Shown one piece after another: positions 11,885 to 17,376 of a stretch of 64,000 bases of DNA. Within the stretch, counting starts at the first letter, position 1. Every line of letters begins with the position of its first letter. The position numbers and the translations under genes are program-made. Under the pieces are notes generated by a model that was given only the letters and a program-made list of their open reading frames with translations, ran no database searches and was not told the origin of the DNA. Location of the stretch: the sequence record MT135025.1. One strand, given 5' to 3'.

Positions 11885-11939
11885 TAAATAAAGTAAACAA
11901 CTCATTAGGCGCGTGTTCGCGCCTTTCTTGGAGATTAAG

Positions 11940-12896
11940 ATGGGACGACAAAGATTAGAAACTGGTACTGCGGGTTCGGTTGGTACTGGTGATACAATTC
12001 ACAACGGTGGTAATAAGCTGCGTGACAACTCTGACGAGTTCTACCACATTAACGCAGACTTTGAACTAACTGAAGCAGGTGAAAACTATATCCCTGCTTA
12101 CAATGACACGTCGCCACGCCCTTTTGCAGGTGGCTATTGGCAGAGAATTCCGCCAAGCTCAACTGCGGGTGGTTCAGGTGGACCGAACAACACTAACTTG
12201 CTAACATCAATCATTACTGGTGGTAAGTATGACATCGACACGTCAGCACTAGGCGGCGGGGCATCAATGACATTAAACTTGCCGAAAATCGGTACAACAG
12301 CGGGCATGGCGAAGCGCGGTGAGAGAATTGAATTTCAAAACACGACTGCGACTCTAGACACAAACCCGATTGTTATCTCACCATCAGCAGGTGATGCAAT
12401 TGTTGGTGCGACTGAACTCAACGGCACACAAATCGTTCGTAACAATTACTGCCACATAATCTGTACAGTAATTGATGATGGTACTGGTCTAGCAGGCACA
12501 CCTCAGTGGGGTGTTAAAATCATCCCAATTTTAGGTGACTTCGGTGCGCCAGTTAACGACACGATTTACACAATCCCAGAGACAGTGACAGTCACAATGC
12601 CGCTATTTGATACTTTATCGTATGCAGCGTGTAAGTTGATGGTTTACGCAGAAAACAGCGACCCAGCTCAGGGTGGTGCGGTTACTCGTCGTATGTCATC
12701 AGAATTGTTGCTGCTAAATAATGTAACAGACGTTTATATTGATGAATACTCAGTAATCAATACAGACAAAGATTTCGGTAACTTGGTTCTAATTGAACCG
12801 CGAGTTGATAATGGAACAATCGTTCTCGATATTACATCAAATGACGATAACGTGTCAATTTCAATCAAATCTATCGAAACAATCAGACTATCGTAA
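11940..12896 (+). CDS. 9: Baseplate long-tail-fibre connector gp9
   Basis: ATG 11940 after a GGAG RBS (the ORF-track start 11913 lies inside a hairpin). 'G..GSVGTGDTIHNGGNKLRDN' is the gp9 N-terminus. Confidence 0.88.
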   Translation: MGRQRLETGTAGSVGTGDTIHNGGNKLRDNSDEFYHINADFELTEAGENYIPAYNDTSPRPFAGGYWQRIPPSSTAGGSGGPNNTNLLTSIITGGKYDIDTSALGGGASMTLNLPKIGTTAGMAKRGERIEFQNTTATLDTNPIVISPSAGDAIVGATELNGTQIVRNNYCHIICTVIDDGTGLAGTPQWGVKIIPILGDFGAPVNDTIYTIPETVTVTMPLFDTLSYAACKLMVYAENSDPAQGGAVTRRMSSELLLLNNVTDVYIDEYSVINTDKDFGNLVLIEPRVDNGTIVLDITSNDDNVSISIKSIETIRLS

Positions 12897-12905
12897 GGGA
12901 CAATA

Positions 12906-15152
12906 ATGAAACAGACGATCAACGTCGGGCAAATTGTTGATGACGGTACTGGTGATTACCTACGACAAGGTGGCATTAAGACCCGTGACAATTTCGACGA
13001 AATATACAGTCACTTAGGCGACGGTAGCAGACTCTATGCTGCCGGTGCTTGGCGCAATTGGAAATTTGCTTCTACATATCTAAACGGTGATACATCGTAC
13101 AACCCTGCTAACGCTGAACTGTATTTCGACGAGAACGGCGATGGTCAGGGTCCTGAACTACATACGAATTTCGGCGAGTCATGGACAGTCGATACGTCGC
13201 TTGGTGCAGTCGATGTGTATCTCCCAAGTGGTGTTGAAGAAGCAGACTACGGTAAAGCGATTCGCGTTCGTGATGTTAAGGGTACATGGGACAAACAGCT
13301 TGTAACAATATACCCAGATTCGAAAGACTCAATCAAACGTGTTGCAGGTTCAACTCAGAACGAACTAGGCTCAGGTGCTGAATTCAGCAACGCATATCAA
13401 GATCTTGAGCTAGTGTTTACGCCACCCCGCCATTGGGAATATGTTGCTCAGAAATACGTAAACGGGCTGACATTTGGCGATGTTCCGAGCGTATTACGTC
13501 GTGCAATTATTGCACGTCAAGATCAGCGTGATTTCAACATGTCACTTGAATTGAATGGTGGCGTGTACAACCAAGCTGCGGTTGAAGTATATCGCCGCGG
13601 TAACTTGCTGTACTTCGGAAACGACCTGAATGACTTCAGTGACTACGGCTCAGTTCCGCTTCACACAGTCGAACCGTGGGTTGCTAATAACCCTGAAACG
13701 TATTACGTAGGTGACTTAGTTCGAGGGGACGTGGTTACAGGTCGTGATGACCGAGTATGGCAGTGTATTGTTGAACACAACAGCATCGGTACGTGGGAAG
13801 AGAACAACTGGGCAGAATTTGCAGATTTTCCTGATTATCAACCACATGCAGGTTCAACTGCATATTCAGTAGGTGATGTGGTTACTCAAGTTGTAGGCGG
13901 TTTTGTTCAAACATTTGAATGCTTGATTTCACACACATCAGCGGCGGGTACAACTGACTTAACTACTGATAATCGCTGGAAGCAATTGACAAATGACGAC
14001 TTAGCACCACTTGATGGGCGTACAATTCGTCTTCGATTGCCTGCAAATGAAGCAGACCCGGTCGCAATGGTCACTTATTTGAGTGACGTATCAAGCTTCC
14101 GTAGTAGCTATGTTCTGAAGTCAATCAAAGTGATTGATGAAAATAACTATGGTGTTCAAGAATCACCGGGCGCGGTTGTTAAAAAAGATTTCGTACCGGG
14201 AATGGAAGTTACACTATCAGATTTTGGTCTGCCTGAATATACTCAATTCAATACAGAAACGCTTGAAGTTCTACTTAACGGTACTCAGTTGACAAAATCA
14301 AACACTGCGGGGAATGGTGACAGCCAGAACGGTGGTGATTATGATTATGACTACATTCAAGATGCTGAAGGGCGCTGGAATACAATCGTATTTGCAGAAG
14401 CATTGGCTGATAGTGATGTGATCACAGTCAGATGGTACGATAACGTAATCGGAACTCTTTTGACATGGGATGAAGGCGATGACAACTTGCAAGAGCGTAC
14501 ACGTGAGATTTTCGTTTCTCGTGACGACTGGGCAGACGTTCGTCGATTCAACAAGATCATTTACACTGATCCACAAAACCCGTCTGCGGCTGTTACTGAA
14601 GTTCTACCGGACCCAGAGACATTTGCACCGGGTGGAACGCTAGTTTCGTTATTTGAAAGTATCTTCCCGATTGGCTCAGTGTATACGAATGCGAACAACC
14701 CGAACAACCCCGCCGATTACATGGGATTTGGTACTTGGGTTCGCTATGCGCCAGGTCGTACAATCGTGGGATGGAACCCAAATGATGATGGGAAATTCCA
14801 TCGAAACAATAACAACGAAAACATTGTTCAAGCAGGTGGTACAGGCGGTTCGATTGGCGTGACTCTTACTAAAGAGAACATCCCTGAGCTAATAAGTACA
14901 ACAAACCCTGACTACAACAGTGAAGGTGAACGCGACATTGGAAATGTCAACGAGCAATATAGCTTAGTTGCGCGTTCAGCAACATCGGGTGGTGACATTA
15001 ACTTGAACGGCTGTCTTGGTGACCCAGAGAACACAGTTCCTCTAGCTTACTACAAAGAAGAGCCAATCAAAGTCAACCACGGTCAAATCGCACAAGCAGT
15101 TGACGTAACTCAGCCATACATCACTGCATACACTTGGTTAAGGACTGCATAA
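12906..15152 (+). CDS. 10: Baseplate wedge/tail-pin protein gp10 with an inserted carbohydrate-binding region
   Basis: 'MKQTINVGQIVDDGTGDYLRQGG', C-terminal 'IFPIGSVYTNANNPNNPADYMGFGTWVRY' and 'TQPYITAYTWLRTA'. 748 aa versus about 600 aa in T4. Confidence 0.95.
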   Translation: MKQTINVGQIVDDGTGDYLRQGGIKTRDNFDEIYSHLGDGSRLYAAGAWRNWKFASTYLNGDTSYNPANAELYFDENGDGQGPELHTNFGESWTVDTSLGAVDVYLPSGVEEADYGKAIRVRDVKGTWDKQLVTIYPDSKDSIKRVAGSTQNELGSGAEFSNAYQDLELVFTPPRHWEYVAQKYVNGLTFGDVPSVLRRAIIARQDQRDFNMSLELNGGVYNQAAVEVYRRGNLLYFGNDLNDFSDYGSVPLHTVEPWVANNPETYYVGDLVRGDVVTGRDDRVWQCIVEHNSIGTWEENNWAEFADFPDYQPHAGSTAYSVGDVVTQVVGGFVQTFECLISHTSAAGTTDLTTDNRWKQLTNDDLAPLDGRTIRLRLPANEADPVAMVTYLSDVSSFRSSYVLKSIKVIDENNYGVQESPGAVVKKDFVPGMEVTLSDFGLPEYTQFNTETLEVLLNGTQLTKSNTAGNGDSQNGGDYDYDYIQDAEGRWNTIVFAEALADSDVITVRWYDNVIGTLLTWDEGDDNLQERTREIFVSRDDWADVRRFNKIIYTDPQNPSAAVTEVLPDPETFAPGGTLVSLFESIFPIGSVYTNANNPNNPADYMGFGTWVRYAPGRTIVGWNPNDDGKFHRNNNNENIVQAGGTGGSIGVTLTKENIPELISTTNPDYNSEGERDIGNVNEQYSLVARSATSGGDINLNGCLGDPENTVPLAYYKEEPIKVNHGQIAQAVDVTQPYITAYTWLRTA

Positions 15153-15838
15153 TGACAACTAAAGCAAGACATGCGTCACGAGTGTGGAGCAATGACTCGC
15201 GCATGAAGATTTTCGATCAAACAGCAATTGACGACTCGGGTTTATTCCCGGGTGGTCGCTTCAATTTCCGCGGTGCGGTATTAGGCGATTCAACAATTGA
15301 CGAAATTCAAGAAGGCGCGTGGGATCCGAACGTTCAAGCTGCAATTATGCAGCTTGCAATGGCAGCAATTTTGCCAGTCGGTACTATTATCTCGTCAACA
15401 GACGCAACGAACCCGTTTAACACGAACCAGTTCAACGAAACAATTACATTCACTGGGACTTCGGCAGTTGATAACATCAGCTTATATGGCGTTTCAGTGC
15501 AGTTGACTGTGGGCGATTCAGACAATGACATTGCAGAAAAAGTTTTCACGGCTCTGCACGCCTCGAATCTGTTTGACACCGTTCCGACAGATCACGTCGC
15601 ACCGTCAAACACGTTTCTATTGAAGCACCGCAGTTCTAGACCGCACAATCCTGCGTACTCAACGACGTTTGAAGACATTTTAGACCCAGAAGGTAGTCCA
15701 ACTGGGATTCAAGCTAAAAGCGTCGTCACGGGTTCGTCAGACGGTCAGAAGAGCTTAGGTTACGGGGAATGGGAATTGTATCACACTGATACAACAACAT
15801 TCACTGATACTGTATATTACTACAGAAGGATTGCATAA
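15152..15838 (+). CDS. 11: Baseplate wedge subunit/tail pin gp11
   Basis: ATG overlaps the gene 10 stop (TAATG). 'AAILPVGTII' and C-terminal 'LGYGEWELY...YYYRRIA'; synteny. Confidence 0.85.
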   Translation: MTTKARHASRVWSNDSRMKIFDQTAIDDSGLFPGGRFNFRGAVLGDSTIDEIQEGAWDPNVQAAIMQLAMAAILPVGTIISSTDATNPFNTNQFNETITFTGTSAVDNISLYGVSVQLTVGDSDNDIAEKVFTALHASNLFDTVPTDHVAPSNTFLLKHRSSRPHNPAYSTTFEDILDPEGSPTGIQAKSVVTGSSDGQKSLGYGEWELYHTDTTTFTDTVYYYRRIA

Positions 15839-17376
15839 TGTCAGGAACAAACATATTCACGCACGCGAGTGACGAGGCAAAATATGTTTACCTGCAACCG
15901 TTCACTTCTCCCGGTTCAGCTTTTGAAGCGGGAGGAGATGTTCAGAGTATTTTGGAGCAAATTGATCCAAGCGCATTGCTACCACTGCCGCCGTTACCTT
16001 ATGCAACTCCGACTGAGGACGGTGCAGTTGAGTACTCGACTCAAGCAGAAGCTAATGCACTTGATGATTTATTGACTGTTCTTACACCCGAAACATTAGA
16101 CGGTGTTGATCAGTTTGTATCACCAGCAACCGATACTCAGCTAGGTAACTTACTTGAATTACGTTCAAGTGATTTGACTCGAACATATGCATCGTCAGAT
16201 GCTAGTCGTTTGCTTTCATATCGTCGTCTTGAAGAAATGATGACGACTAGAAATGCACTTGCCGATGACACAACTAATGAATCTCAGGGGTTTGCTCAGT
16301 TTGCAACTCTAGCTGAATCATTAGCATACAACCCATCACGCATAATCTCGCCTATGCGAACGTGGAACTTGATTAAAAAAGAAATTCCAAACCCGTGGGC
16401 GCAAGCAACCGAGACATCAACCGGTGTCGTTAGAACAGTAGCACCGAGTGATTCATTGAAATCAGATGCTTCTATCGCGATTAGTGTCAAAGGGTTGAAT
16501 CATGTATCAGCAACAACTTCAAAGCGAGGTGCGTTTAAGTTAACACAAAACAACTATGATCGCAATGCAAGTGATGCAAACGAATATGCAATAACTCCCG
16601 GTACAATTGATAATTTATTGGCTACGGGTGATAAGGTCGGATTCTTTCAACTCCCTGCTACGTTCACAAACGACTCAACTCAAGCAACTAGTGCGGCATT
16701 AGGCTACGAACTTGCAAATAAACTGGGTCCAGATGGTGGTACGATTACAGGTACGCTTCAATGTGACAACATTTACAGTAATATTGTTACGAGACAAAAG
16801 CAATACAGCTATGGCGGCTCATATTACGTTAATGTAAGAGAAACGCGAGAAGTATTCCCGAACAATCAACTTGACGCTAAAATCGGCTTAGCAGGTCGAC
16901 CAGTCGGGAGCATTTTTCATTGTACAGAAAATGTAGACCCGAATGTTGTATTTGGCGGCGTGTGGTATAGAATCAGAGCAGGTCAAACAATGATCGGTCA
17001 AGGCACGGGCGACGATGGCGTGCGTCGTCGTTACTTCTCGGCAGGGACATATCGCGATGACGACCGAGTTACATTGTACGAGCGCCATTTGCCTAGCCAT
17101 AGTCACAAAAGCTGGGGTGAAACATACTCGGGTTCTAAATCTGCATGTGTTAAGTACGGTACATATCGAAACCCGTATGGCGTGACGTATTACTGTAAAG
17201 AATACAGCTACGTTGATTATTGGAGATTTGGTAAATCTGGCTCTCGCAATAATATAGGCATGGGTTCTACTGACCGAGATAATTACATGTATTACACATC
17301 ACCGGTAGGTGGCGGTCAAGCTCATGAAAACATGATGCCATTCTATCCCGTTTATATTTGGAGACGAGTTAAATGA
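15838..17376 (+). CDS. 12: Short tail fibre gp12, paralogue A
   Basis: 'NIFTHASDEAKYV' N-terminus, fibre repeats, collar 'PVGSIF...NPNVVFGGVW', HxH needle 'LPSHSH', end 'MPFYPVYIWRRVK'. Confidence 0.85.
   Translation: MSGTNIFTHASDEAKYVYLQPFTSPGSAFEAGGDVQSILEQIDPSALLPLPPLPYATPTEDGAVEYSTQAEANALDDLLTVLTPETLDGVDQFVSPATDTQLGNLLELRSSDLTRTYASSDASRLLSYRRLEEMMTTRNALADDTTNESQGFAQFATLAESLAYNPSRIISPMRTWNLIKKEIPNPWAQATETSTGVVRTVAPSDSLKSDASIAISVKGLNHVSATTSKRGAFKLTQNNYDRNASDANEYAITPGTIDNLLATGDKVGFFQLPATFTNDSTQATSAALGYELANKLGPDGGTITGTLQCDNIYSNIVTRQKQYSYGGSYYVNVRETREVFPNNQLDAKIGLAGRPVGSIFHCTENVDPNVVFGGVWYRIRAGQTMIGQGTGDDGVRRRYFSAGTYRDDDRVTLYERHLPSHSHKSWGETYSGSKSACVKYGTYRNPYGVTYYCKEYSYVDYWRFGKSGSRNNIGMGSTDRDNYMYYTSPVGGGQAHENMMPFYPVYIWRRVK

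Follow-up and report, generated by a model that had tools for sequence, protein, structure and literature searches.

A tandem pair of CBM5/12-like modules inserted into the T4-type tail pin protein gp10 of KVP40-like Vibrio phages

What has been added to the tail pin protein of KVP40-like Vibrio phages, and what could the addition be doing at the baseplate's periphery? This question is raised by a stretch of 64,000 nucleotides from sequence record MT135025.1 (this whole stretch is called the window below), in which the gene for the baseplate wedge subunit gp10 encodes 748 residues instead of the 602 of phage T4. An earlier note, written from the letters of the window alone, had placed two repeats resembling chitin-binding modules of the carbohydrate-binding module (CBM) 5/12 type at positions 13662-13988 and had proposed that they tether virions to chitin, biofilm or lipopolysaccharide (LPS). 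These positions correspond to gp10 residues 253-361, and the peptides quoted for them were correct. The window derives from the KVP40-like Vibrio phage V07, to which its gp10 gene is 100% identical, and the same DNA is 98.8% identical to annotated gene 10 of KVP40.

The protein encoded at this locus is T4-type gp10. Its three Pfam domains, T4_gp9_10_N (PF07880, residues 2-181, 89.6 bits), Gp10_D3 (PF22670, 46.8 bits) and Gp10_C (PF21939, residues 582-747, 136.6 bits), all score above their cut-offs, it matches the PHROGs family phrog_958 'baseplate wedge subunit' from end to end (E 5e-197), and a phmmer search of all PDB chains found the chains of T4 gp10 structures with E 2e-78. In the phmmer alignment, gp10 residues 1-249 pair with T4 residues 1-214 and residues 364-748 with T4 residues 220-602 (chain 5hx2_G), and the break is identical against gp10 of Klebsiella phage KP1 (9f4a_FA). 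Since the alignment breaks at this place against both proteins, residues 250-363 constitute a clean insertion with no counterpart in T4 or KP1 gp10, just as the note had claimed. The excess over T4, put at about 150 residues beforehand, was measured as 146, of which approximately 114 belong to this insert, 24 to a second insertion and the remainder to small insertions and deletions. The second insertion, residues 57-80 in the N-terminal domain, is rich in Asp, Gly and Asn, and its identity within the clade ranges from 58 to 96%. Judged by Pfam limits, the main insert is located between the N-terminal gp9/gp10 domain and D3, and its site is taken to be domain D2.

The Pfam check suggested by the earlier note gave a borderline result. 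The family CBM_5_12 (PF02839) matched the insert at 25.3 bits (E 1.6e-5) when the insert was scanned alone and at 16.1 bits in the whole of gp10, in both cases under the gathering threshold of 26.2 bits. Nine homologues gave 11-25 bits, all of them under the cut-off as well, and a faint precomputed CBM_5_12 match is on record for one homologue. CBM_5_12 was the sole extra Pfam family recurring across all 10 clade members, and viral CBM_5_12 clusters were also the lead given by the ESM Atlas (score 0.86).

That the insert consists of two repeats is confirmed by profile-profile comparison of repeat 1 (R1) with repeat 2 (R2), which hhalign aligned with E 2.3e-4, as diverged repeats. A stacked profile of both repeats (A5) had as its best PDB match the chitin-binding domain of chitinase A1 (ChiA1), 1ED7, at E 2.4e-4. 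The same profile also matches immunoglobulin CH1 domains (E 0.006-0.5) through a Y-x-C-x-V-x-H-x-x-S core, a false positive at the level of the motif. We regard the exhaustive search with this profile as the decisive test of homology. Among 1.84 billion representative proteins, it found 239 matches with E<=1e-3, and the 51 that reach E<=1e-10 put the signal far beyond chance. Of the matches, 95 were scanned, and 90 of these (44 of 46 plus 46 of 49) carry CBM_5_12 above the Pfam threshold, mostly in many copies. The gp10 pair aligns column by column, over the full module length, with the tandem repeats of four array proteins. When the pair was joined with these repeats into a second profile (A7), the tandem CBM12 of Vibrio chitooligosaccharide deacetylases (CODs) was reached at E 3.6e-11 and 1ED7 at E 2e-7.

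Chance resemblance of motifs, the insert being in fact another small domain or a linker, could be argued from the Pfam scores, from the immunoglobulin matches of the repeat profile and from a first AlphaFold2 model that was poor. It is countered by the 51 profile matches at E<=1e-10, almost all of them CBM_5_12 proteins, by an alignment that spans the whole module and not a single motif, and by a structure search independent of Foldseek, described below, which puts CBM5/12 first and well apart from other folds. We consider this explanation essentially excluded. The CBM5/12 likeness stated in the earlier note is thus borne out by profile search and fold, and can be specified as CBM12/ChiA1-type.

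The closest sequence relatives of the gp10 modules are proteins of 6-17 repeats from metagenomes (E down to 6e-35), encoded on phage contigs beside tail genes. Next to these array genes lie, among others, genes for Phage-tail_3, Phage_BR0599, Collar and terminase, and once a run of several CBM_5_12 genes. In PHROGs the array proteins have matches to 'tail fiber protein' families and a weaker one to a 'head decoration' family, and their repeats are accompanied by Collar, Collagen, Peptidase_S74 and Sipho_Gp37 domains. Among the 95 scanned matches of the repeat profile, none had a chitinase domain or any other glycoside hydrolase domain. As far as sequence comparison can tell, the gp10 modules belong to a subtype arrayed along phage tail-fibre proteins, and their nearest kin are not enzymes. 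Small stand-alone relatives (70-222 residues) gave no match in a word-indexed search, and in the KVP40 record the repeat profile and PF02839 found only the two repeats of gp10. On two metagenomic phage contigs (L018:9127-14412 and L020:4763-13152), four or five consecutive CBM_5_12-repeat genes stand by PhoH and amidase genes, and one of these runs is broken by an IS605 OrfB/Cas12f-like gene (L020:7646-8809). Such runs look like cassettes of exchangeable fibre genes.

This kinship bears directly on the proposed chitin tether. According to that proposal, 36 modules would bind chitin and hold virions on particles and exoskeletons where vibrios settle, a 'sit and wait' arrangement by analogy with the adherence of Hoc to mucus. 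Fold and family both include proven chitin binders, namely the ChiA1 chitin-binding domain, CBM12 of Vibrio CODs and CBM5 of chitinases. It speaks against the proposal that the nearest relatives are phage fibre repeats free of hydrolase domains, and that a profile made from the gp10 inserts alone reaches neither Vibrio CODs nor chitinases; as the deacetylases of the host genus are not reached, nothing points to a recent acquisition from the host. Members of CBM5/12 vary in ligand, so that the fold by itself gives no specificity, and the statement that vibrios colonise chitin is ecological reasoning only.

Individual residues of the two repeats point in both directions. The modules share a motif of ChiA1/CBM12 flavour, ...Y-x-x-G-D-x-V...[YWF]-x-C-x-x-x-H-[TN]-S...W, and in a stacked alignment of both repeats from six phages its Y, V, C, H and W are invariant. 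In R1, W258, Y266, V272, C287, H291, W297 and W302 are invariant, the CBM_5_12 stretch recognised by Pfam in homologues covers residues 264-300, and the hairpin is six residues longer than in phage repeats. Key residues of R2 are Y320, V326, C339, H343-T-S345 and W358. R2 is the closest architectural match of the ChiA1 domain, the distance between the H-T-S histidine and the final Trp being identical in the two; together with the 34% identity seen in structural alignment, this favours the tether. A further position of interest is Trp687 of ChiA1, which we take to be essential for chitin binding. R1 retains the invariant W297 at this position in all members, another point in favour, followed by Glu as in ChiA1 and, beyond the aligned Trp, by a shorter tail. 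R2 of V07, to the contrary, lacks an aromatic residue there: the aligned residue is Thr349, a Thr that KVP40 and D479 share, whereas most relatives carry Tyr and one carries Asn.

A first AlphaFold2 model, based on the 10 clade sequences alone, had a predicted local distance difference test (pLDDT) of 44 and was unusable. With an alignment enriched in CBM_5_12 repeats, a mean pLDDT of 87.2 was obtained, with three strands per repeat and values of 89-96 in R1, and the CBM5/12-like fold anticipated by the earlier note was predicted. Foldseek placed the tandem CBM12 of Vibrio deacetylases at the top, with a match over both modules (probability 1.00, E ~1e-4), followed by fibre and baseplate proteins of phages 7-7-1 and Milano. 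In VIA-align, R2 scored Z 7.7 against 4tx8, the CBM of a Chromobacterium chitinase, with a root-mean-square deviation (rmsd) of 1.8 across 49 residues at 29% identity. Scores were Z 7.0-7.5 against CBM12 of Vibrio CODs and Z 5.4-6.6 against the ChiC, ChiB and ChiA1 binding domains. A VIA-align search of 48,161 chains, independent of Foldseek, ranked CBM5/12 modules first, unrelated folds staying at Z<=3.1. Foldseek and the two VIA-align searches returned essentially only CBM5/12 and phage fibre or baseplate modules (Z 7.7 to ~5). Sequence and model together thus predict that residues 250-363 are a tandem of small beta-sheet CBM5/12 modules. Experimental structures of phage baseplates and fibres contain the fold too (Milano, 7-7-1, Pa193, PhiTE, cyanophages Pam1 and A-1(L)), as does that of the Anabaena contractile injection system. 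In the KP1 variant Lilla1, residues 47-93 of a 617-residue baseplate protein (PDB 9f4a, chain Le) have the same small fold with Z 4.8, a hint that T4-type baseplates may use it at other places as well.

Occurrence of one fold in so many virion proteins brings up a serious rival to any glycan-binding function. The modules could make protein-protein contacts within the baseplate, e.g. with gp11, gp12, gp7 or a clade-specific fibre, and so stabilise or regulate the pins without touching a glycan. The fold is that of the insertion domain of T4 gp23/gp24, which makes capsid protein-protein contacts with neighbouring subunits, and the same-fold modules of Milano, 7-7-1, Pa193, PhiTE and the Anabaena injection system are not known to bind glycans. 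The fingers of T4 gp11 clamp gp10 at its middle domain (PMC3004832), a position that would bring the insert near other proteins. A point against such a structural role is that most relatives of the insert belong to fibre arrays, a typical kind of adhesion device.

Distribution of the insert and its evolution bear on both of these alternatives. In a tblastn survey, which may miss very divergent cyanophage gp10, a gp10 homologue was found in 1472 phage records and the insert in 51 of them, all KVP40/nt-1-type Vibrio phages (schizoT4 clade). Only two of the 53 Vibrio records having a gp10 homologue are devoid of it, and this confinement to phages of vibrios agrees with a chitin tether. In the ~1400 other T4-like phages, nearly all the matches listed are in two pieces around the insert and comprise ~1800 bases (~600 residues); these phages evidently make the same pin without it, which argues against a structural role. 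A contrast between marine and enteric phages, for which the earlier note had suggested a survey, was not seen as such, the insert marking one clade of Vibrio phages. A collection of 5.8 billion proteins contained the insert in nine 90%-identity clusters only, all of 746-749 residues, and a scan of IMG/VR for additional insert-bearing loci yielded one, in a VH7D-like phage.

The insert is in frame in all members. Its identity is 61-88%, compared with 68-91% for whole gp10, and its ratio of nonsynonymous to synonymous substitution rates (dN/dS) is 0.12-0.14 against 0.05-0.11 in the remaining gene, with dS near saturation. The guanine-cytosine content of the insert equals that of the surrounding gene and so gives no hint of a recent transfer. 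Evidently, the insert is under purifying selection, and these features together indicate that it has long been present in the clade, has a function and is held under slightly weaker constraint than the scaffold. A constraint as strong as dN/dS ~0.13 would suit the structural role as well; that the insert evolves somewhat faster than the other parts of gp10 is more in keeping with an exposed part than with a packed interface.

The place of insertion has been used more than once. Gp10 of Aeromonas phage AS-zj (Ceceduovirus, NC_048673; locus L021:101-2236) has 712 residues and carries a different insertion of ~110 residues at exactly the same site, in which no Pfam family was found. Because this insertion is unrelated to that of V07, the site between T4 residues 214 and 220 appears to be an insertion-tolerant, recurrent insertion point. 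An unrelated insert at the same site also counts in favour of the structural role, to which we assign, on the whole, a low though appreciable probability. In AS-zj, the gp10 segment behind the insertion matches Pfam T4_gp9_10_C with 31.8 bits. The idea that the insert splits a domain like the C-terminal one of gp9 rests only on this match, direct comparison of the gp9 C-terminal domain with gp10, with and without the insert, having given no signal in BLAST or phmmer.

We prefer, with moderate confidence, a reading in which the gp10 modules would serve as a weak multivalent glycan adhesin. In T4, 18 copies of gp10, assembled as trimers, are located with gp11 and gp12 at the baseplate periphery, and the gp10-gp11-gp12 unit turns ~100 degrees toward the cell on the baseplate switch (PMC3004832). 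The number of up to 36 modules, as given in the earlier note, follows from these 18 chains provided that they are conserved here. The module pair would have been inserted once, into an insertion-tolerant gp10 loop in the ancestor of KVP40/nt-1-type Vibrio phages, and would then have been retained under purifying selection. If T4 stoichiometry of six trimers holds, six peripheral pins would expose 36 modules and these might add avidity for a polysaccharide surface as the baseplate nears it. The Vibrio envelope (LPS or capsule) and polymers of N-acetylglucosamine (GlcNAc) are both plausible candidate targets. There is a precedent on which the adhesin reading leans: in the Bacillus myophage Vp4, CBMs inserted into Gp119, its baseplate wedge 3 protein, have been proposed to aid host binding (PMC11406892). 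Binding of chitin, and with it the tether, would be a special case of such an adhesin and seems to us rather unlikely in view of the points given above.

Several observations weigh against the adhesin and the homology it builds on. Single-sequence tests were each sub-threshold, and a narrow-family profile made of the gp10 inserts alone found nothing significant in PDB, 1ED7 appearing at E 0.57 amid antibody and photosystem noise. Since the good AlphaFold2 model needed an alignment enriched in CBM_5_12 repeats, it is not independent of the homology call. Z values under 8 fall within the range in which the tool warns of common arrangements and are modest, as expected for a domain of 50 residues, and R1 taken separately has a weak structural match (CBM5 1aiw, Z 3.6). 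To this are added Thr349 of R2, placed where an aromatic residue would align, and the non-glycan, structural use of the same fold in T4 capsid proteins.

Genomic context of the gene is that of T4. Pfam matches of the flanking open reading frames give the order gp8-gp9-gp10-gp11-gp12 (Table 1), the upstream gp8 being recognised as Phage-Gp8. At the gp12 position, the encoded protein terminates with a Gp10_C-type domain (PF21939, E 3e-10), in line with published work according to which gp10, gp11 and gp12 have a common fold.

Table 1. Coordinates of gp10, its insertions and repeats, and neighbouring genes in the window
Feature	Position	Strand	Basis
gp10, baseplate wedge subunit / tail pin gene, 748 residues	12906..15152	+	open reading frame list, Pfam, phrog_958, T4 gp10 chains
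Insertion relative to T4-type gp10, residues 250-363, ~114 residues, holding both modules	13653..13994	+	phmmer break; split tblastn matches
Repeat 1 (R1), residues 255-306, CBM5/12-like	13668..13823	+	repeat alignments; Pfam stretch; model
Repeat 2 (R2), residues 307-362, CBM12/ChiA1-type	13824..13991	+	Pfam stretch 317-348; 1ED7 alignment; structure search
Second small insertion, residues 57-80, N-terminal domain, relative to T4 and KP1 gp10	13074..13145	+	phmmer gap
gp9, long tail fibre connector, upstream neighbour	11913..12896	+	Pfam T4_gp9_10_N, T4_gp9_10_C
gp11, tail pin, downstream neighbour; T4 partner of gp10	15134..15838	+	Pfam GP11, E 9e-126
Short tail fibre gene at gp12 position	15838..17376	+	location after gp11; Gp10_C-type C-terminal domain

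The T4-type pin protein gp10 is usually viewed as a conserved scaffold. Our results suggest that it has a hot spot, between T4 residues 214 and 220, which accepts whole domains, and that a major clade of broad-host-range Vibrio phages displays a pair of carbohydrate-binding-type modules there. Were the modules to bind glycans, they would represent an extra adsorption determinant in phages under development for aquaculture, where the targets are Vibrio parahaemolyticus, V. alginolyticus and V. harveyi, and could tie phage retention to chitin or biofilm surfaces. Should even the chitin tether prove true, chitin particles would become phage-loaded traps, a new factor in the ecology of vibrios and their phages on marine snow and exoskeletons. 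The gp10 pair also links the widespread, unstudied fibre arrays of CBM_5_12 type to an example that is well placed and experimentally tractable. CBM-decorated baseplate proteins and phage fibre repeats of CBM5/12 type were already known; new is a clearly delimited case in a T4-type pin protein. In the searchable literature (KVP40 gp10 and chitin, CBM5/12 in phage tails, KVP40 receptors) we found no earlier description of the gp10 insert and no published binding test, nor any CBM decoration of T4-type gp10.

How do the gp10 modules compare with known systems? The CBM12 of chitinase A1 from Bacillus circulans (1ED7) is likewise a module of ~45 residues with the pattern Y-x-x-G-x-x-V...Y-x-C-x-x-x-H-T-S-x-x-G...W, and it resembles R2 with Z 5.4 and rmsd 2.1 over 44 of 45 residues, at the 34% identity already mentioned. 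The gp10 hairpins are longer (by six residues in R1 and four in R2), and R1 is four residues shorter past the aligned Trp. The gp10 modules are inserted into a virion protein, whereas the ChiA1 module is appended to an enzyme. Vibrio chitooligosaccharide deacetylases (3WX7, 4NY2/4NZ1, 8YFP) are proteins of the phage's host genus that, like gp10, have two modules of this fold one after the other, and their CBM12 superimposes on R2 with rmsd 1.4-1.8 over 45-49 residues. Their sequences, however, are only 17-22% identical and devoid of the Cys of gp10 and phage repeats, and the modules are oriented differently, so that rmsd over both rises to ~12.

Most similar in sequence are the phage fibre arrays (PHROGs families phrog_9851, 5073, 8147 and 11373; metagenomic proteins P0012, P0013, P0017 and P0033), whose W, Y, V, C, H-T-S and W columns are near-invariant as in gp10. 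There, 6-17 repeats make up whole fibre proteins, whereas in gp10 two repeats are embedded in a conserved wedge protein. The T4 gp23/gp24 insertion domain offers the same small fold in a structural protein of the T4 family (6uzc, Z 5.7-6.5; 5vf3, Z 5.6; 1yue, Z 4.4), but has no detectable sequence similarity to the gp10 repeats.

With respect to the carrier, the closest parallels are baseplate proteins of other phages. The 'evolved' Dit and Tal of siphophages are conserved baseplate proteins with extra CBMs (PMC7533335, PMC4742702), and both these and Gp119 of phage Vp4 resemble gp10 in being a conserved scaffold with additional CBMs that homologues lack, for which a contribution to the binding of host polysaccharide has been proposed. 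Their modules have other folds (e.g. CBM16- or CBM22-like), their hosts are Gram-positive and the carrier proteins are different ones. The adherence of T4 Hoc to mucus, finally, is a conceptual parallel only: in either case many copies of a small, weakly glycan-binding module would be displayed on the virion. Hoc does so with immunoglobulin-like domains on the head, while the modules of gp10 are CBM5/12-like and belong to the baseplate.

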